A DNA stretch of 64,000 nucleotides, from the IMG/VR virus record IMGVR_UViG_3300042482_000702, positions 248,001-312,000 of that record. One strand, 5' to 3'. Position numbers and translations under genes: made by a program. Of this stretch, positions 13,532 to 45,769 are shown piece by piece. How positions within the stretch are numbered: the first letter of the stretch is position 1; each line of letters opens with the position of its first letter. The notes below the pieces were generated by a model. It saw nothing but the letters and a program-made list of their open reading frames with translations, searched no databases and had not been told where the DNA came from.

Positions 13532-13940
13532 GGGAGTGACACGGAATTGACTATTCGTAATAGTTATTCGGGGCACGTAGTGAGATGTTCTCTATCACTT
13601 AAATCTATGGGTACAACAATTTAGACGGAAACGTTTTAAACAAAATGGCTCTAGTAGGTCTTGTACGTCAAGATGAGCTTGTGAACGTAGCGTAAGCAAA
13701 CACACATTGGGGTCGACGGATATGTGTACCTAGCAACAGAAATATCTTAAGGTGTGATACCACCCGAAGAGTGTCAAGGTCTCGTTTGAGGGTCTACCTA
13801 TTAAAGTGAACCTCCCACAGTTGTAGGTAATGATGGAAAAATTAGAACCTTCTATTTGTCAGTTGAGAATTAACTGAATAAACGTGTAGTCCTTAATAGG
13901 TAATACAAATAACACTTGGGTTCGAGTCCCAACACTTCCA
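13532..13940 (+). ncRNA. ssrA: tmRNA
   Basis: Acceptor GGGAGTG/CACTTCC with G3-U70; 5' GGAATTGAC; T-arm TTGGG-TTCGAGT-CCCAA; internal tag ORF 13627..13695; smpB nearby. Confidence 0.92.
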
Positions 13941-14065
13941 CGTCCACTGGAGAGTCCCAACACCTCCACACAAAAAAGAGACCTAAATGGTCTCTTTTTT
14001 TATTGATAATCACCAATAAAAAAACCACCCGAAGGTGGCTTATTATCAGTTCAAATGTTTATTTT

Positions 14066-14998: not shown

Positions 14999-15883
14999 GG
15001 CTTAATACGATGAGAATACTCGTCTTATTGAGAATCTTCGGAAGGATTATTGTTTCCCTTCGTTTCCACCATCTTTTGAATGGTAACCCTCATTGCCGAT
15101 TGGTTAGACCAATCACTCCTTGAGATATCATCTACTCTCTCATTATTCAACTCTCTTTAACCTTGCGAGCTAACTCCGGATTCGACTCCGTAGAGGTTTT
15201 TGGCGAGAATACATTCAGACTTGCGGTCATCCTGTGCAACGAACGGCTCGTTACTATGTAGGCAACTTGTCGACGATACCTGGTAAACATTTTTGCTATT
15301 GTCTATTTAGTTTTTCACCATATGAAAATAGTTAATGTGTTGTGGATGTATTCAGGAAGTAGTTTACCGTAAGCTCCCTAACCTTTTGGGTTAAAGAATA
15401 CTAAACTTCCCGATGAGATATCCCTATCTCCAAATTTCAAGAATTCTTCAAATCAATATCTTGGTAGATATTTGATAGGGATAAAGTCAGCACCACCTGT
15501 TACTTAATCTTGCCTTTCGGCGTTAAGATTCCTTTTATTTTGGAACCCGCAATTATAAGGTCGGATAACCCTATTTCTTACTTGATTCCTATGGGTTCTT
15601 CTTATCTTGATTCCTCAATCAACCGGACAATCCACATTGCCAAGTTAGTATTCCATTTCCCTACGAAGTTATCCTCGGTACTACAGGACTACTAATATCC
15701 CACTTGCTTACTCGAGTTCGGTTTCCCAAACCACAAAATCACTAACACAAATGATTTCATTTTATCCCCGTTTCCGGGATTATTTAAAGATGATAAGCCA
15801 CCTATTATCTTTGATACAACACCGAAGTGTTATAATGGATAATCTAAAATTTCTAAGAACGTCTTTAAGGTTTCCCTTAATTG
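14963..15883 (-). ncRNA. Large (~920 nt) structured ncRNA, GOLLD-like candidate
   Basis: No credible ORF; own TAnnTTTG promoter (15889-15896) and terminator; many minus-strand GNRA/UUCG-capped hairpins. Confidence 0.7.
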
Positions 15884-16530: not shown

Positions 16531-16607
16531 TAGTCAGAACAGGATTCGAACCTGTGTACCCTCGTATGAGTTCGTCATACCGTGCATCTCCAATGTGCTA
16601 CCTGACT
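16531..16607 (-). ncRNA. tRNA-like RNA with non-canonical anticodon arm
   Basis: Acceptor AGTCAGG/TCTGACT and perfect T-arm ACAGG-TTCGAAT-CCTGT; anticodon arm TATGA-CGAAC-TCATA lacks U33. Confidence 0.55.
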
Positions 16608-19874: not shown

Positions 19875-20900
19875 TTACAACTTTTTAAATTCCGGTCTGA
19901 TTAAATTCCATATAATCTCGGAGTAATCCTTACGGTCAAACATTCTAAATAAAATACCTGATAAATGTTTAGGTTGTTCTGACACCCACTGAGCAAATTC
20001 TTTTCTATCTGTGATGGGTTCTTTATCGTTATACTTACCATACATTTTACCATCAAATCTTTTACCAGCATCTTCGGATATTGACATAAAAAAATATCGC
20101 AATTCTTTTACATAATTTTTAATTTTAGTGTAAAATTCATCCGGAACATCTTTTAATAATTCCATCACATCTTCACCATTTTTTAAATACTCCCAAATAC
20201 CTGTTGTAGATACATTAGTCATGATTTTGTGAAGACGCAAATATTCAATACCTTTAACCTTAACCCTATCCCCATTTGAGAACTTCACCACAAACCCCTC
20301 TTGGTCGTTTTTAACCATTTCTTTTAATTGTTTGTAGTCATTGATACCATCGTATTTTTTAACGACATCAAAACCCCATTCATCCCAATCTGTGATGTCA
20401 TAATCTTTACCCCAATTATCGAATGCTCCCAATAGGACCAGTTTCTCTTCACCTTTATAATCCAAAACAATTCTGTTTTCCGGGTAGATAATCTCAAAAC
20501 AAAATGTCATATGTCTGAACATTATGTCAGTGTTGTATTTCTGTAAGAGTTCGGTAGCCTTGATTGCTTGGTCTGATGTAAATGAACCACGAGTGGCAAC
20601 CACCCATTGACCCTGATACCAAAATACGATACCTAATGAACCATCCATTTTTTCATAAACCTCAAAGGTTTCAGTTGGAGTATATTTTCCTTCTTCTATG
20701 TTAAAGAATTTTTTGAATGGTGTTGCAACAATGTCTCCTTTGTCGTCAGTAACTAAACCTCTACACATAAGGGTCACCTCATCCCATAGGTTCTCGTACT
20801 GAACTTTTTCAGAGTAGTTCCATATGGTTAATGGAAGTGTTGGATGTACTTGTTTGTAAAGTAATCCGTCTTCGTAATATTTGTTTAGTTTTTCTAACAT
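19875..20900 (-). CDS. T4 Rnl1-like RNA ligase
   Basis: Motif I EKMDGS, KKFFN, FEII, EGFVV, VKVK. Confidence 0.9.
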   Translation of the reverse strand: MLEKLNKYYEDGLLYKQVHPTLPLTIWNYSEKVQYENLWDEVTLMCRGLVTDDKGDIVATPFKKFFNIEEGKYTPTETFEVYEKMDGSLGIVFWYQGQWVVATRGSFTSDQAIKATELLQKYNTDIMFRHMTFCFEIIYPENRIVLDYKGEEKLVLLGAFDNWGKDYDITDWDEWGFDVVKKYDGINDYKQLKEMVKNDQEGFVVKFSNGDRVKVKGIEYLRLHKIMTNVSTTGIWEYLKNGEDVMELLKDVPDEFYTKIKNYVKELRYFFMSISEDAGKRFDGKMYGKYNDKEPITDRKEFAQWVSEQPKHLSGILFRMFDRKDYSEIIWNLIRPEFKKL

Positions 20901-34308: not shown

Positions 34309-34381
34309 TGGTCCCGGAGAATTACGATATCCCGACTTCTACATTATGAGTGTAGCACTCTAACCTCTGAGTTACGAGACC
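34309..34381 (-). tRNA. tRNA CAT (Ile2 or Met)
   Basis: Cloverleaf; loop CTCATAA; T-loop ATCGTAA. Confidence 0.8.
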
Positions 34382-39782: not shown

Positions 39783-40430
39783 TTATTTTAACCATTTTCT
39801 AACAGCGTTATCACTAACACCATATTTACGACCTGTTCCTCTATACCCAAGATTAATAATATCTTGTTTTATTTGTTCTATGGACGGTCTTTCAACTTTT
39901 CTATTTTGTTTATTTGAACATTTAATACATTTATCACTTTTTTTATCTTTTGTACTACCACATTCACAATGATATTTAATTTTATTGGATTTCCCGGAAT
40001 ATGTACTAGTTTGGGAGTGACAATTAGGACATAAAAATCTTAAATTTTCTATTCTATTATCATTATTAACTCCATTTATATGGTCTAAATGTAGACTAAT
40101 ATTTTTACCATTCCACACCCCATTATTACCACATTCAATACATTTATATTCAAGTAAATTTTTCTTTAATATTCTATTTTTAATTTTTTGTCTTGGAAAT
40201 GTTGAATTTTCAACAAAAACATCCTCATCTAATCTAACCTCTTTAGGTCCAGTCCCATAATAATTATATTTAGGAATCTCTAATCCCAATTTAATTATTC
40301 TATCTTTAATGTTCCTATAACCACCCGAACCATTTGGTGATAAATTAAATAATAAAATAACCTCTCTCATAGATTTTGAATTATTCAAAATTTCAAATAA
40401 CTCTTCTTTTGTAATAGTTTTTAAGTTCAT
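39783..40430 (-). CDS. HNH homing endonuclease inside the tRNA array
   Basis: CIECG...LHLDHINGVNNDNRIENLRFLCPNCHSQT; C-terminal HTH. Confidence 0.9.
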   Translation of the reverse strand: MNLKTITKEELFEILNNSKSMREVILLFNLSPNGSGGYRNIKDRIIKLGLEIPKYNYYGTGPKEVRLDEDVFVENSTFPRQKIKNRILKKNLLEYKCIECGNNGVWNGKNISLHLDHINGVNNDNRIENLRFLCPNCHSQTSTYSGKSNKIKYHCECGSTKDKKSDKCIKCSNKQNRKVERPSIEQIKQDIINLGYRGTGRKYGVSDNAVRKWLK

Positions 40431-40661
40431 ATTATGTCTTTTATTATAAATATCTTAAAAAATACCAAAGTTCACCATAACCTATGTTTTACCAAAAATA
40501 ATAACATAATCATTCGTAGTCCCCTGCCGGGCAACCCTCCTACTTTTTCACACAATCCGGATGCCTCCAAATCTAATTTTCTTTTTTACCCCTATTAAGA
40601 AACGCGTTTTCCGTTCGGTAGTTCAAGCCCATTTTCGTGAGTTAAATAATTATGTTATTTG

Positions 40662-40744
40662 AGTTCAGGGTCGGATTCGAACCGACGAGGACTTTCGTCA
40701 TTGGTTTTGCAGACCAATCTAATCAACCACTCTAGCACCTGAAC
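40662..40744 (-). tRNA. tRNA-Cys(GCA) with long variable arm
   Basis: Loop CTGCAAA; U73; GAC-GAAA-GTC variable hairpin. Confidence 0.88.
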
Positions 40745-42297: not shown

Positions 42298-42807
42298 TTA
42301 AAAAAATAAATAAGGTTCCCATTCTTTTGGGATATCGTGATGAACTTGTTTCATTAACATCAGATAATGTGGTCGTCTTGGTTGAGGTATGTCTTTACCA
42401 TATTCCTCTAACGTCAAATTGGACTTCTCACCGTTACATCTCCTACAAGCGGTAACCAAGTTGTCCCAACTATCTTTACCCCCCTTAGATTGGGGTACTA
42501 CATGGTCTAATGTTAATGTCTTTCTGTTATTACACCCACAATATACACATTCAAAGTTATCTCTACGATAAACATTCTCTCTATTTAAAGGAACTTTTTG
42601 TATGATTTGATTAACATACTTATATACCCGAATGATTGATGGTTTTTTGATGTCCAATTCAGGATTTACTAATTTGAATGATTCCGGATGTTCGTTTATA
42701 ACATCGGCATTACCTTTATAAGAAATGACGAAAGCCCTCTCTGTGGAAATAATACTCCTCGCCATGAAACTTGAATCTAAAACCAAAGTTTTTTGGTAAC
42801 TACTCAC
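42298..42807 (-). CDS. HNH endonuclease (McrA-like)
   Basis: RDNFECVYCG...TLDHVVPQSKGGKDSWDNLVTACRRCN. Confidence 0.9.
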   Translation of the reverse strand: MSSYQKTLVLDSSFMARSIISTERAFVISYKGNADVINEHPESFKLVNPELDIKKPSIIRVYKYVNQIIQKVPLNRENVYRRDNFECVYCGCNNRKTLTLDHVVPQSKGGKDSWDNLVTACRRCNGEKSNLTLEEYGKDIPQPRRPHYLMLMKQVHHDIPKEWEPYLFF

Positions 42808-43524: not shown

Positions 43525-43606
43525 GTTTGAGCTCATTTCACTTTGTTATTTGGCTCAAAACATAACTAATTTGAGCTTAATAATCAAAGTTTGTGAGCCA
43601 CATTTG

Positions 43607-43678: not shown

Positions 43679-43684
43679 ATATTG

Positions 43685-43756
43685 TCGGGATAGCAGGGGT
43701 CGAACCTGCCGCCTCTTGGTCCCAAACCAAGCGTCTCACCCCAAGACTATATCCCG
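43685..43756 (-). tRNA. tRNA-Pro(TGG)
   Basis: C1-G72; loop TTTGGGA. Confidence 0.9.
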
Positions 43757-43827
43757 AATAATAAACTACCACCTGACTCTTTTCGAACTTTGCAGGCTCG
43801 TATCATTCCCTAATGGTAGTTATTTTG

Positions 43828-43901
43828 TCTAAATGACTGGACTCGAACCAGCGGTCTCTACATTCCAAGTGTAGCGGATTAACCAACTTTCCCACATCTA
43901 G
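43828..43901 (-). tRNA. tRNA-Pro(TGG), second copy
   Basis: Loop CTTGGAA (A37 instead of G37). Confidence 0.85.
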
Positions 43902-43920
43902 ATTTTAATTTTATTTTCTG

Positions 43921-44006
43921 CGGAGAGCAGAATACTTGAAATCCATCCCTTTTACAGAACCACTCGCTTAGCAGGCGGTGACAATACCCTGATTGTTTTA
44001 CTCTCC
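43921..44006 (-). tRNA. tRNA-Ser(GCT)
   Basis: Loop CTGCTAA; long variable arm; G73. Confidence 0.8.
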
Positions 44007-44012
44007 ATTTTG

Positions 44013-44084
44013 TGTCCCCAAGAGGATTCGAACCCCTATCTCTGATGCCGTAAATCAAAATTCTATCCGTTGAACTATGGTGAC
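44013..44084 (-). tRNA. tRNA-Arg(ACG)
   Basis: Loop TTACGGC. Confidence 0.8.
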
Positions 44085-44088
44085 AATT

Positions 44089-44208
44089 TGAGGTTGAGAA
44101 CTCCTCTGTGTTGTGTGTTTAAGACTAACTTTTTATACACTAAATAGGACTTACGCAAGTAGGTTGGCCTAATTTTAATACTTAATTCCCCTCTCACAGG
44201 AACAACAC
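44089..44208 (-). ncRNA. Pseudoknotted scaffold RNA, copy B
   Basis: GTGTTGTTCCTGTGAGAGGGGAA-[~73 nt]-AACACAGAGGAGTTCTCAACCTCA. Confidence 0.65.
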
Positions 44209-44213
44209 GGCTG

Positions 44214-44303
44214 TGAGGTTGAGAACTCCTCTGTGTTAGTCTTTACTAGTTAATTGCAATAACCGTGTAGCCACTCTATTTTCCCCTCTCACAGGAACAA
44301 CAC
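44214..44303 (-). ncRNA. Pseudoknotted scaffold RNA, copy C
   Basis: Same 23-nt and 24-nt flanks as copy B, with a different ~43-nt insert. Confidence 0.65.
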
Positions 44304-44306
44304 ATT

Positions 44307-44495
44307 TTACTTCCATTGAGTTTTTCGGTTATACTTCCAAGTTTTATGTTCTCTGTATTTGTGAGAGAACTGACCTCTTCTATAATGAACACCCTCATCC
44401 CAATAAGGTGGATATTCAAACTTTAACCAAATTACTCTGTAATCTTTGGAACAAGTTGCCTTGTTCAGTTTCATTCTGTTTGTGTTTACACTCAT
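44307..44495 (-). CDS. Small basic hypothetical protein
   Basis: C-terminal TWKYNRKTQWK. Confidence 0.6.
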   Translation of the reverse strand: MSVNTNRMKLNKATCSKDYRVIWLKFEYPPYWDEGVHYRRGQFSHKYREHKTWKYNRKTQWK

Positions 44496-44545
44496 AATCT
44501 TGAGTCTGTTGTTTAGCAGACCTCAAAGATTATCCAATACCTTTT

Positions 44546-44803
44546 TCATAACCGTAATTTATAAATTCTTTTATAATCATCCATCGCCGACTTCAGATTT
44601 ACAATACATTCTCGGTAATTAACATTATCACCAAGATTAAATCTTTCATTTTCTTGTTCCCTCTTGAATAACACTTTCAATGAATTATCAATGTTAGATA
44701 GAATGTCCAAGTAAATCATTTCCTTATCTTTGGATTTTTTTAAATCAAATTTCAAATCAACAATTAGACCTTCTAATTCTTCAATTTTTTTATCTTCATC
44801 CAT
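44546..44803 (-). CDS. Small coiled-coil protein
   Basis: ORF track. Confidence 0.55.
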   Translation of the reverse strand: MDEDKKIEELEGLIVDLKFDLKKSKDKEMIYLDILSNIDNSLKVLFKREQENERFNLGDNVNYRECIVNLKSAMDDYKRIYKLRL

Positions 44804-44817
44804 AACAAATAATTTTG

Positions 44818-44890
44818 GGAGTTAGTTCGGTATCGAACCGAATTCTTTGGTACCACAAACCAACGCTTCACCGTTAAAGCTTCAAACTCC
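44818..44890 (-). tRNA. tRNA-His(GTG)
   Basis: Encoded G-1 pairing with C73; loop TTGTGGT. Confidence 0.9.
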
Positions 44891-44954
44891 ATATTACCCC
44901 ACTTCCCCGGCTTAACGGACCGAGTGCCATATAGGAGGTGTGGGGGTAACCTCG

Positions 44955-45026
44955 CTCCTCCGGGTGGGATTGAACCACCATGATTTGATTAACAGTCAAA
45001 CATAATTACCATTATATGACAGAGGA
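44955..45026 (-). tRNA. tRNA-Asn(GTT)
   Basis: Loop CTGTTAA; G73. Confidence 0.9.
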
Positions 45027-45176
45027 AGATATGACCACTATGTTATTTTGCGAACGTATGAAGCTCGTATCATTGTTAAGTCATAGTAGTCCAAGGCGTT
45101 ACGCACCCATCTGGTAACTTTACTTCTCTTGAGTCCGGGTAAGCGCTTACCAACTCGGGGGTTGTTTCCTTGTTTG

Positions 45177-45249
45177 TGGGGACTACCGGTTACGCTCCGG
45201 TCTCCTTGATTCTTCAGACCAATGCTTTCACTAGATTAGCTTAATCCCC
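45177..45249 (-). tRNA. tRNA-Phe(GAA)
   Basis: Loop CTGAAGA; T-loop AGCGTAA. Confidence 0.85.
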
Positions 45250-45392
45250 AATTAAAATGATGGTGAGATACCCGTTTCGTCTCACTCTTGACTGCTTAAT
45301 AGTAGTTTTACTGTGCACAGGCAGAGGGTTATAATTTCGTTTATTGTAATCAGAATTGTCGACATTCTTTCATACAGAAATTCATCATTTTG

Positions 45393-45479: not shown

Positions 45480-45550
45480 TACCTCGTGATGGTTATGCTC
45501 CACCGCCATTTGTATGTAAAACAAATACGCTCCTATTACGCCAACGAGGT
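45480..45550 (-). tRNA. tRNA-Val(TAC)
   Basis: Loop TTTACAT; T-loop AGCATAA. Confidence 0.8.
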
Positions 45551-45643
45551 AAATAAAATTAACAATTGCTATCAGGATTTAAACGTCGCTCAGAATACTT
45601 ACTGACGCCCACCGATTGGGTACGATGACTAGTTAATTTTTTG

Positions 45644-45715
45644 TACCGATGGGTGGGATTGAACCACCGACACCTTCCGTATGAAAGAAGTGCTCTACCA
45701 CTGAGCTACATCAGT
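45644..45715 (-). tRNA. tRNA with CAT anticodon (Met/Ile2)
   Basis: Canonical cloverleaf; loop TTCATAC. Confidence 0.8.
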
Positions 45716-45769
45716 ATTTTGGTGGATATAGGCTCATCACCTATTCGTGGGTTTCCACCGAACCCCTCG

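Follow-up and report, generated by a model that had tools for sequence, protein, structure and literature searches.

Two short elements in a phage tRNA gene array, here termed E1 and E2, are members of an undescribed family of RNAs of about 60 nt that is found only in the tRNA gene arrays of uncultured freshwater phages. The family is based upon a frozen scaffold that displays a fast-changing 7-nt loop in the style of an anticodon loop. It is tentatively read as a mimic of particular tRNA anticodon arms, with a probability of about 0.35. The elements lie in a stretch of 64,000 nt (the window; positions 248,001 to 312,000 of IMG/VR record IMGVR_UViG_3300042482_000702), and all coordinates refer to this window.

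The initial annotation described two homologous sRNAs of about 55 nt with a common core and different closing stems, and both elements do exist and are homologous as it stated. The shared 24-base core, AATGATACGAGC-N7-GTTCG, occurs exactly twice in the window, both times on the minus strand where the elements had been placed. It is expected 0.06 times, and none of 100 shuffles gave two matches. CGAGC and GUUCG pair as 5 bp including one G.U, closing the 7-nt loops CUGCAAA (E1) and UUCAUAC (E2). As the annotation had claimed, these loops are identical to the anticodon loops of tRNA-Cys(GCA) and tRNA(CAU) encoded in the window. The closing helix proposed for E1 (AACTACC/GGTAGTT) is right, and extends to 8 bp as AACUACCA/UGGUAGUU. 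That proposed for E2 (TATGAC/GTCATA) requires correction. The two strands are complementary in this window, but homologues read GTCAAA there; the helix that is conserved, and that shows a compensatory change in the homologous locus L026 (C-G to U-A), is GACUACUAUG/CAUAGUGGUC.

The core defines the family. Exact-core scans found 79 real loci in IMG/VR and at least 120 in JGI metagenomes, together with one lake MAG contig among 185,579 species genomes, and none in cultured phages or in Rfam 15. A gapped scan anchored on the two strands of the internal loop gave mostly chance hits and only four new real variants. Members always lie within tRNA arrays on the tRNA strand, starting 0–5 nt after the end of one tRNA and ending 4–7 nt before the next, and each phage has only one or two copies. 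E1 belongs to the common subtype, and its fold matches the family consensus. E2 is a derived subtype with 8 unique homologues, all of which have the UUCAUAC loop.

Starting from the terminus, the structure comprises a closing helix (P1) of 8–10 bp, a 2-bp helix (P1b), an invariant internal loop with AAUGAUA opposite AAARGAGU (consensus AAA-N-GAGU in alignments A1 and A2), and an invariant 5-bp stem (P2) with a conserved G.U pair that carries the 7-nt loop. P1 covaries strongly, with 117 double-change cells against 32 in shuffles, and 91.5% of its cells are paired. G.U pairs occur only when the sequence is read on the minus strand, so the structure belongs to the RNA made from the tRNA strand. 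P1b changes from G-C to A-U in locus L059, and from U-A to G-C in loci L002 and L079. When the scan is anchored only on the 3′ half of the core, 64 of 67 loci keep the 5′ strand of the internal loop and 3 have AAUGACA. The rare variants of P2 keep pairing (CGAGU/GCUCG and CGAAU/GUUCG). Thermodynamic folding alone is only mildly better than that of shuffled sequences (z = -2.6 for E1 and -1.5 for E2), and the support for the structure comes from comparison with homologues.

Table 1. Coordinates of E1, E2 and adjoining features in the 64,000-nt window
Feature	Position	Strand	Details
E1, complete member, common subtype	43764-43821	minus	58 nt; covariance model R1, 78.4 bits, E 2e-21
E1 P1, 5′ strand	43814-43821	minus	AACUACCA
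E1 P1, 3′ strand	43764-43771	minus	UGGUAGUU
E1 P1b	43808 with 43775	minus	G just 5′ of AAUGAUA, paired with C
E1 internal loop, 5′ strand	43801-43807	minus	AAUGAUA
E1 stem-loop P2	43784-43800	minus	CGAGC, loop, GUUCG
E1 P2 loop	43789-43795	minus	CUGCAAA
E1 internal loop, 3′ strand	43776-43783	minus	AAAAGAGU
E1 core	43784-43807	minus	AATGATACGAGC-N7-GTTCG
E2, derived subtype	45033-45091	minus	59 nt; covariance model R1, 29.6 bits, E 4e-5
E2 P1, 5′ strand	45082-45091	minus	GACUACUAUG
E2 P1, 3′ strand	45033-45042	minus	CAUAGUGGUC
E2 internal loop, 5′ strand	45068-45074	minus	AAUGAUA
E2 stem-loop P2	45051-45067	minus	
E2 P2 loop	45056-45062	minus	UUCAUAC
E2 internal loop, 3′ strand	45043-45050	minus	CAAAAUAA
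E2 core	45051-45074	minus	AATGATACGAGC-N7-GTTCG
X element	45092-45176	minus	Joined directly to the 5′ end of E2
tRNA-Pro(UGG)	43827-43901	minus	Immediately upstream of E1, 5-nt gap
tRNA-Pro(UGG)	43684-43756	minus	Immediately downstream of E1, 7-nt gap
tRNA-Asn(GUU)	44954-45026	minus	Immediately downstream of E2
tRNA-Phe(GAA)	45177-45249	minus	Upstream of X and E2; Rfam tRNA model, 42.3 bits; missed by ARAGORN at default settings, found at a relaxed threshold
tRNA-Cys(GCA)	40661-40744		Anticodon loop identical to the E1 loop
tRNA(CAU)	45643-45715		Anticodon loop identical to the E2 loop
Hairpin with loop GUAUGAA	about 45365-45380		About 300 nt upstream of E2; loop complementary to that of E2

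The loop keeps much of the format of an anticodon loop across 109 unique members. Position 1 (tRNA position 32) is always C or U, position 6 (37) is always A and position 7 (38) is A or C, and the 32/38 combinations are only C.A, U.C, U.A and C.C. Positions 3–5 use only eight of 64 triplets (GCA, CCA, CGA, UCA, UGA, GUA, CAU and CAC). The pattern YU-NNN-RN, which had been set beforehand as the test of the anticodon reading, is followed only in part, because position 2 (33) is U in 59% of members, C in 37%, A in 4% and G in 1%. U33 is nearly universal in real tRNAs, yet the loop CCCGAAA lacks it in all 18 unique members. Of the loops, 51% are identical to a canonical tRNA loop found in these phage arrays; this includes the unusual UUCAUAC, which is carried by 10 of 79 canonical CAU tRNAs and appears on at least three different scaffolds. 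The identity to the phage's own tRNA loops seen in this window is not general, however. CUGCAAA elements sit beside canonical UUGCAAA tRNA-Cys in 6 loci, and in 13 to 14 loci UUCAUAC elements accompany a CAU tRNA, the only one detected, that has CUCAUAA. Three triplets (CGA, UCA and CAC) never occur as canonical tRNAs in these arrays. The elements neither replace a missing tRNA nor copy the local loop variant, and a full-size tRNA with the same anticodon is usually present in the same locus.

The loop is the only fast-evolving part of the element. In 50 close pairs, loop positions 2–5 diverge 2.6 times faster than 200 nt of flanking sequence, while the rest of the core does not change. Mutual information between the loop positions and every column from -45 to +93 reaches a maximum of 0.33 bit, which is only a weak phylogenetic signal. 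Complements of each locus's own loop are no more frequent in that locus than complements of other loop types (154 against 171.5), and the hairpin whose loop is complementary to that of E2 is present in only some E2 loci. The partner of the loop is therefore elsewhere, and the loop probably acts in trans.

The initial annotation suggested that the elements are anticodon stem-loop mimics or nuclease decoys, and the comparative evidence supports this partly. In the favoured explanation E1 and E2 are stable RNAs transcribed as part of the polycistronic tRNA array. They would probably be released by the same cuts that mature the neighbouring tRNAs, that is by 3′ processing of the upstream tRNA or RNase P acting at the foot of P1, and by RNase P at the 5′ end of the downstream tRNA. 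The scaffold of P1, P1b and the internal loop would hold a stem-loop with the geometry and sequence format of an anticodon arm, in which the loop carries the specificity and is exchanged quickly between closely related phages. The RNA would then be a competitor, decoy or inhibitor for a protein that reads positions 34–38 of the anticodon loop of particular tRNAs (Cys, Trp, Ser, Tyr, CAU-type and UCA), most likely host anticodon-loop nucleases used against phages. The family, its structure, its genomic context, the loop statistics and its restriction to phages are established by the analysis, whereas the processing route, the action in trans, the identity of the target and the mimic or decoy function itself are inferred.

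Conformity at positions 34–38 with freedom at 33 is what a mimic would need for enzymes that cut in the 3′ half of the loop. VapC toxins cut at about 36/37 and target Cys-GCA, Ser-UGA, Ser-CGA, Trp-CCA and initiator CAU (PMC5175351), corresponding to five of the eight triplets. This overlap is post hoc, comes from mycobacteria and enterobacteria rather than from the unknown freshwater host, and is weak once the fixed NNA frame is allowed for (p about 0.07). The phage also encodes an RNA ligase family protein and a CCA-adding-type enzyme, and phage tRNAs have been proposed as a counter to host tRNases (PMC10264068). A sacrificial decoy is a weak defence against a catalytic nuclease unless it binds tightly or resists cleavage. 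Moreover, the invariant internal loop and stem sequence are not explained by simple mimicry, and point to a second, unidentified partner or activity. Metatranscriptome contigs cover E1 plus its upstream tRNA exactly, and summed depth peaks over E2 and X, although these are assembled contigs without strand information that may include DNA or sum over related phages.

A bolder form of this reading, held with slightly lower confidence, is that freshwater phages carry a programmable RNA module, in which a constant scaffold cut out of the array by the tRNA-processing enzymes displays an exchangeable replica of an anticodon arm. By changing one to three loop bases the phage would retarget the RNA against whichever host anticodon-loop nuclease, or other reader of the anticodon arm, it meets, making an RNA-only anti-defence decoy system for tRNA-targeting immunity. 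tRNA cleavage is emerging as a common bacterial defence against phages, and the countermeasures known so far are nuclease-insensitive phage tRNAs and tRNA repair enzymes. A small RNA that copies only the anticodon arm, and whose specificity loop turns over quickly, would be a third strategy and the first RNA-only one, and its loop repertoire would report directly on which tRNAs are under attack in natural freshwater communities.

Among the alternatives, the one that survives best, though still unlikely, is that the loop is a codon-like antisense probe. Its triplet and the following A residues would pair with the anticodon loop of a tRNA in a loop-loop kissing complex, and the scaffold would recruit a protein or shield, sense or mark that tRNA. 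The complementary anticodons would be UGC Ala, UGG Pro, UCG Arg, UGA Ser, UAC Val and GUG His. AAA at loop positions 5–7 is complementary to U32-U33-U34, which the canonical Ala, Pro and Val tRNAs of these arrays carry (UUUGCAU, UUUGGGA and UUUACAU). In this frame the two odd loops, UUCAUAC and CUCACAA, both read as His codons. Position 2 could pair with the purine at 37 in roughly 79% of members, by a hand count that assumes G37 in tRNA-Arg(UCG), and the triplets are G/C-rich at positions 3–4 and never contain A there, as expected for short pairing. The absence of a partner in cis is also consistent with this reading. However, positions 1 and 7 follow natural 32/38 combinations rather than complementarity to positions 38 and 32 of a target; C at position 7 of UUCAUAC cannot pair with a pyrimidine at 32, and C at position 1 faces A38. 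UGA in this frame has no ordinary tRNA partner, and the phage's own tRNAs would be bound as well.

Less likely is that the element is mainly a processing device for the array, with the loop incidental: a structured spacer, an RNase P or RNase Z guide, or a small self-cleaving ribozyme that would define the CCA-less 3′ end of the upstream tRNA. P1 begins close to the upstream tRNA, right after its discriminator in the cases read, and only 2.3% of 2,857 array tRNAs encode CCA. The invariant core and conserved G.U resemble catalytic or metal-binding cores, and the internal loop lies about 12 stacked layers from the end of P1, where the T-loop lies in a tRNA. HDV-like theta ribozymes also begin right at the 3′ end of phage tRNAs, and T4 species 1 and 2 are likewise small non-tRNA RNAs embedded in a phage tRNA cluster; the variable loop has no counterpart in these RNAs. 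Against this, most tRNA junctions in the same arrays do without the element, a restricted and fast-changing loop repertoire is not expected of a pure processing element, and one metatranscriptome contig runs unbroken through tRNA-Pro and E1. No Rfam ribozyme matches at E up to 10. The nested P1/P2 topology does not fit the double pseudoknot of HDV-like ribozymes; covariation shows that the 5′ end pairs with the extreme 3′ end, which leaves no sequence for P4, J4/2 or P2. Nor does it fit the three-way junction of the hammerhead, since only two helices are present and the core reads AAUGAUA ... AAA, with G8 and A9 not conserved, in place of CUGANGA and GAA. Comparison by eye of the internal loop with the hammerhead, HDV-like and hairpin ribozymes, the k-turn and the sarcin-ricin motif found none that fits fully.

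It is also doubtful that the mimic is aimed at a tRNA-modifying enzyme or an aminoacyl-tRNA synthetase that reads the anticodon, rather than a nuclease. Of unique members, 83% carry NNA-A-A, and A36-A37-A38 is the determinant of the i6A37 transferase MiaA; mimicry of an anticodon arm to bind a synthetase has a precedent in the E. coli thrS operator, which mimics the anticodon arm of tRNA-Thr. However, Ser and UCA loops make up about 45% of unique members and SerRS does not read the anticodon, the CAU and CAC loops are not MiaA substrates, the phage encodes no MiaA-like gene, and MiaA as target would give no reason for the triplet to diversify. The weakest reading is a drastically reduced, armless tRNA that is given a CCA end, charged and used in decoding: the element occupies a tRNA slot and shares with the D- and T-armless mitochondrial tRNAs of nematodes and mites a length of 55–60 nt, a terminal helix (here 7–9 bp), two connectors (here 12–14 nt) and an anticodon-type arm (here with plausible anticodons), and the phage has its CCA-adding-type enzyme, but ARAGORN in its mitochondrial modes (-mt and -mtmam), which detect D- and TV-replacement-loop tRNAs, finds nothing, U33 is missing in 41% of members, the connectors are invariant and the same scaffold carries eight anticodons with no change in terminal helix or stem, so no identity elements track the anticodon, full-size isoacceptors coexist with it, there is no evidence of charging, and bacterial EF-Tu and ribosomes are not known to accept armless tRNAs.

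Neither element matches the Rfam tRNA model RF00005 even at E up to 10, whereas in the same scan 12 neighbouring tRNAs match it and tRNA-Tyr matches the related tRNA-Sec model; ARAGORN at a relaxed threshold also finds nothing over the elements. Compared with positions 27–43 of a canonical tRNA, the stem sequence is the same whatever the triplet, there are no D or T arms, and the arm sits on a different, invariant internal loop. The thrS operator and mascRNA, a tRNA-like small RNA cut out by RNase P and RNase Z, show that an RNA that is not a tRNA can present an anticodon-like arm or be released by the tRNA-processing machinery. Those are cis-regulatory or eukaryotic RNAs of one fixed specificity, while the present family is a free-standing set of phage genes whose loop changes among eight, and Rfam models of tRNA-like RNAs do not match it. 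The setting recalls phage countermeasures to tRNA-targeting defences, such as nuclease-insensitive phage tRNAs and T4 Pnkp and Rnl1 repair, and the inferred decoy logic recalls RNA anti-CRISPRs. Literature searches for the core sequence and for anticodon-arm decoys in phages found nothing, including no phage RNA that mimics only the anticodon arm.

A T-box specifier loop is not supported: a triplet followed by an invariant A is present, but there is no Stem I architecture, antiterminator or downstream gene, since the element sits between tRNAs, and there is no Rfam T-box hit. A protein-coding mini-ORF was rejected. An AUG in the core puts loop positions 2–4 in one codon, but every core position is invariant, including third codon positions, and the frame runs into the covarying P1 strand and ends at different places, in E1 inside the next tRNA. 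A Shine-Dalgarno reading of AAAGGAG was rejected because the G is variable (G, A or U). The neighbouring ORFs encode only HNH endonucleases and proteins of unknown function.

Whatever its function, the family is sharply defined and widespread, with a conserved non-canonical core that makes it a good subject for structural and biochemical study. Rfam scans at gathering and permissive thresholds found nothing over E1, E2 or the other unknown slots of the array, and the 'spacers' of large phage tRNA arrays hold several further unknown structured RNAs. One of these is the X element, a separate conserved structured RNA without an Rfam match that precedes E elements of both subtypes in 26 unique loci. 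Its closing helix is CAAGG/CCUUG, and its two inner hairpins covary.

The window belongs to a 322-kb IMG/VR virus record, and carries a long tRNA array on the minus strand, with 21 tRNAs found by ARAGORN and several more by Rfam, plus a GOLLD RNA (288 bits) and a tmRNA (62 bits). The latter two lie about 30 kb from the elements studied here, next to further tRNAs. Both of these elements (E1 and E2) are on the tRNA strand. Their shared core AATGATACGAGC-N7-GTTCG occurs exactly twice in the window and nowhere else in the genome, and no shuffle of the window gave two matches. The pair of related elements described in the initial annotation is real. The 7-nt loops CUGCAAA and UUCAUAC are identical to the anticodon loops of the window's tRNA-Cys(GCA) and tRNA(CAU), as had been claimed, and the proposed structure of E1 is right. 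For E2 the complementary hexamers TATGAC and GTCATA that were taken as the closing stem do exist, but they are specific to this window. The conserved helix is 10 bp, formed by GACUACUAUG with CAUAGUGGUC, and this sets the limits of E2. Rfam finds four tRNAs that ARAGORN misses at default settings, the array has three tRNA-Pro(UGG) genes, and the tRNA-Cys is unusually long at 84 nt. Two HNH endonuclease genes are inserted within the array, probably as homing elements. The positions of these and other features are collected in the table.

Locations of features of the window, and of two variant members at other loci
Location	Strand	Feature
45033-45091	-	E2
45092-45176	-	X element, fused to the 5′ end of E2
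45250-45391	-	142-nt element between tRNA-Tyr and tRNA-Phe
44085-44306	-	Two tandem units
43525-43605	-	81-nt spacer between tRNA-Ile and tRNA-Lys
44890-44953, 43902-44011, 45551-45642, 45716-45768	-	Four further non-tRNA slots between tRNAs
15007-15413 and 13532-13943	- and +	GOLLD RNA and phage-encoded tmRNA
45480-45550, 45177-45249, 34309-34381, 16531-16607	-	tRNAs found by Rfam only: Val(UAC), Phe(GAA), a second CAU tRNA with loop CUCAUAA, and an odd Phe(GAA)-like gene with a poor D arm
42298-42807 and 39783-40430	-	HNH endonuclease genes
about 20256-20669; genome C1:54616-55035	- (window)	RNA ligase family protein (PF09414) and CCA-adding / poly(A) polymerase family nucleotidyltransferase
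L018:3351-3413	-	Variant member, loop UUCAUAA on a CGAGU/GCUCG stem
L140:518-581	+	Variant member, 8-nt loop UUUUCAAA

The two elements belong to a larger family. An exact-core scan of IMG/VR returned 81 loci, of which 79 are real members and 2 are chance hits inside unrelated sequence, and a scan of metagenomes returned at least 120 rows. Among one genome for each of 185,579 prokaryotic species there were 15 hits, only one of which has the flanks of the family; this lies on a 7.5-kb contig of a lake MAG. No cultured phage in the INPHARED collection has the element, Rfam 15 has no match even at E up to 10, and a full-text search of the literature for the core sequence found no paper. Sequencing runs that hold the region are mostly lake, aquifer and other aquatic metagenomes, plus a few metatranscriptomes. 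A scan anchored on the 3′ half of the core found only three further loci, which have AAUGACA instead of AAUGAUA, and the 5′ core strand is therefore close to invariant in its own right. A covariance model built from 53 members found every known copy and no diverged extra copies in 810 kb of related arrays. Phages have one copy, sometimes two.

Every real member lies inside a tRNA array on the tRNA strand. The upstream tRNA typically ends 15-19 nt before the core, which is 0-5 nt before the closing helix, while the downstream tRNA starts 24-27 nt after the core, which is 4-7 nt after the helix. The neighbors differ from locus to locus (Asn-E-Ile, Pro-E-Pro, Trp-E-Tyr, Thr-E-Asp, Ser-E-Pro and others), and the element therefore moves among slots as tRNA genes do. 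Only 2.3% of 2,857 tRNAs in these loci encode CCA, and the phage has a CCA-adding-type nucleotidyltransferase. In 26 unique loci, including that of E2 in this window, the element is fused at its 5′ end to another conserved structured RNA of about 85 nt, here called X, which precedes elements of both structural subtypes. X has a closing helix CAAGG/CCUUG and two inner hairpins with compensatory changes, and no Rfam match. A pseudoknot between its ACCCC and GGGU sequences is possible.

The consensus structure is based upon a closing helix P1 of 8-9 bp, followed by a small mismatch region and a 2-bp helix P1b. This leads into an internal loop with AAUGAUA on the 5′ strand and AAA-N-GAGU on the 3′ strand, and then the helix P2 (CGAGC/GUUCG, with a conserved G.U pair) that closes a 7-nt loop. 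On 53 distinct sequences 94.5% of cells are paired, against 80% in shuffles and 20-39% when the partner strand is slid, and 117 cells have changes on both sides against 32 in shuffles. Seven of the eight P1 pairs show compensatory changes, and P1b covaries in three lineages. P2 hardly varies, and the few variants keep pairing. G.U pairs occur only when the element is read on the minus strand, so this is a structure of the transcript. E2 represents a small derived subtype with 8 unique sequences, in which P1b is stacked directly on P1, there are seven extra bases in the 5′ connector, and CAAAAUAA replaces AAARGAGU. It scores 30 bits with the model, against 78 bits for E1. The parts common to both subtypes are AAUGAUA, P2 and the following A-run. 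Of two variant members, that in locus L018 lies in a contig that also has a CCA-loop copy, while that in locus L140 has a loop longer by one nucleotide.

The loop was analyzed in 109 unique real members, and is described here with the corresponding tRNA positions. Loop position 1 (tRNA position 32) is always C or U. Position 2 (33) is U in 59%, C in 37%, A in 4% and G in 1%. Positions 3-5 (34-36) use only eight triplets: GCA (21 members), CAU (18), CGA (18), CCA (17), UCA (17), UGA (14), GUA (2) and CAC (2). Position 6 (37) is always A, and position 7 (38) is A or C. The same pair at positions 3-4 is found with different bases at position 2; for example, UCA occurs with all four. The selected unit is therefore positions 3-5 and not 2-4. 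The 1/7 combinations (C.A, U.C, U.A and C.C) are natural 32/38 combinations, and 51% of the loops are identical to canonical tRNA loops in the same set of arrays. This includes UUCAUAC, a minority form of CAU tRNA loop (10 of 79), which appears on at least three different scaffolds. The elements neither replace missing tRNAs nor copy the local loop variant. Full-size Cys, Trp, Ser-UGA, Tyr and CAU tRNAs usually coexist with them, whereas CGA, UCA and CAC never occur as canonical tRNAs in these arrays.

In 50 pairs of closely related loci (3.5% flank divergence), loop positions 2-5 differ at 9% per site and 14 pairs have different loops, while the rest of the core is unchanged. The binomial p is 3e-4, but this is indicative only because the pairs are not independent. 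Examples are GCA against CCA with 4 differences in 300 flank bases, and UGA against GCA with 5 in 300. No other column of the element or its flanks covaries with the loop, and complements of a locus's own loop are not enriched nearby. The variable triplet therefore has no partner in cis. The 142-nt element of this window contains a hairpin whose loop GUAUGAA is complementary to the E2 and tRNA(CAU) loops, but that hairpin is present in only some related loci.

The evidence on expression comes only from assembled contigs of metatranscriptomes. One run has a 149-nt contig that matches 43754-43902 without a mismatch, corresponding to E1 plus the upstream tRNA-Pro, and the summed depth of the run peaks over E2 and X at 855, against 24-38 over the small ORFs. 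This is consistent with abundant RNA but does not prove it, since contigs have no strand, DNA may be present in the library, and conserved segments sum the contributions of related phages. One metatranscriptome run has a 144-nt contig whose two ends coincide with the 142-nt element (45248-45391), which suggests a discrete RNA.

The family, its structure, its context and the loop statistics are shown by the data, and they point to a stable small RNA with a scaffold under extreme purifying selection and a loop that is a trans-acting specificity element in anticodon-loop format. The function of that RNA, including any binding of a protein, is inferred from sequence alone. We tentatively favor an anticodon-arm mimic, and the interpretation of the initial annotation, that the loops are anticodon stem-loop mimics or nuclease decoys, is supported in part. 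Conformity at positions 32 and 34-38 with freedom at 33 fits a reader of the 3′ half of the loop. VapC-type nucleases cut near 36/37, and their known targets (Cys-GCA, Ser-UGA, Ser-CGA, Trp-CCA and initiator CAU; PMC5175351) include five of the eight triplets. The chance of that overlap is about 0.002 among 45 anticodons, but only about 0.07 once the fixed NNA frame is allowed for, and the comparison is post hoc and comes from unrelated hosts. This view does not explain why the internal loop and the P2 sequence are invariant, why 41% of members lack U33, or how a decoy would beat a catalytic enzyme. A plausible setting is given by the RNA ligase family gene of the phage, although its match is right at the cut-off of 27 bits, and by the published idea that phage tRNA arrays counter host tRNases (PMC10264068). 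No RtcB or MiaA homologue was found in the phage.

The alternatives are an antisense, codon-like loop that kisses tRNA anticodon loops, a processing element or ribozyme, and a mimic aimed at modification enzymes or synthetases. The weakest is an armless tRNA, as the arm-reduced tRNA detectors fail to match.

On the favored reading the element would work like an anticodon arm on a foreign scaffold, but it is not a member of any family that could be tested. The tRNA models, the arm-reduced tRNA detectors and all Rfam ribozymes and tRNA-like RNAs fail to match. The closest concepts are anticodon-arm mimics such as the thrS operator, tRNA-like RNAs released by RNase P and RNase Z, armless mitochondrial tRNAs, ribozymes that follow phage tRNAs, and RNA decoys such as RNA anti-CRISPRs. 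We regard the element as a new form of tRNA mimicry, which is itself already known; if the decoy reading holds, it would be a new kind of anti-defense.

The two tandem units (start-to-start spacing 125 and 95 nt) share identical 24-nt and 23-nt ends around different middles, and this stretch has the highest depth in one metatranscriptome run (161, against 0-28 elsewhere), with no Rfam match and unremarkable predicted folding. The four further non-tRNA slots are 53-110 nt in length and none has an Rfam match, so the array holds many uncharacterized RNAs. The 81-nt spacer folds into a long, near-perfect predicted hairpin (-25.2 kcal/mol, z -5.3), with 0 of 200 shuffles as stable.
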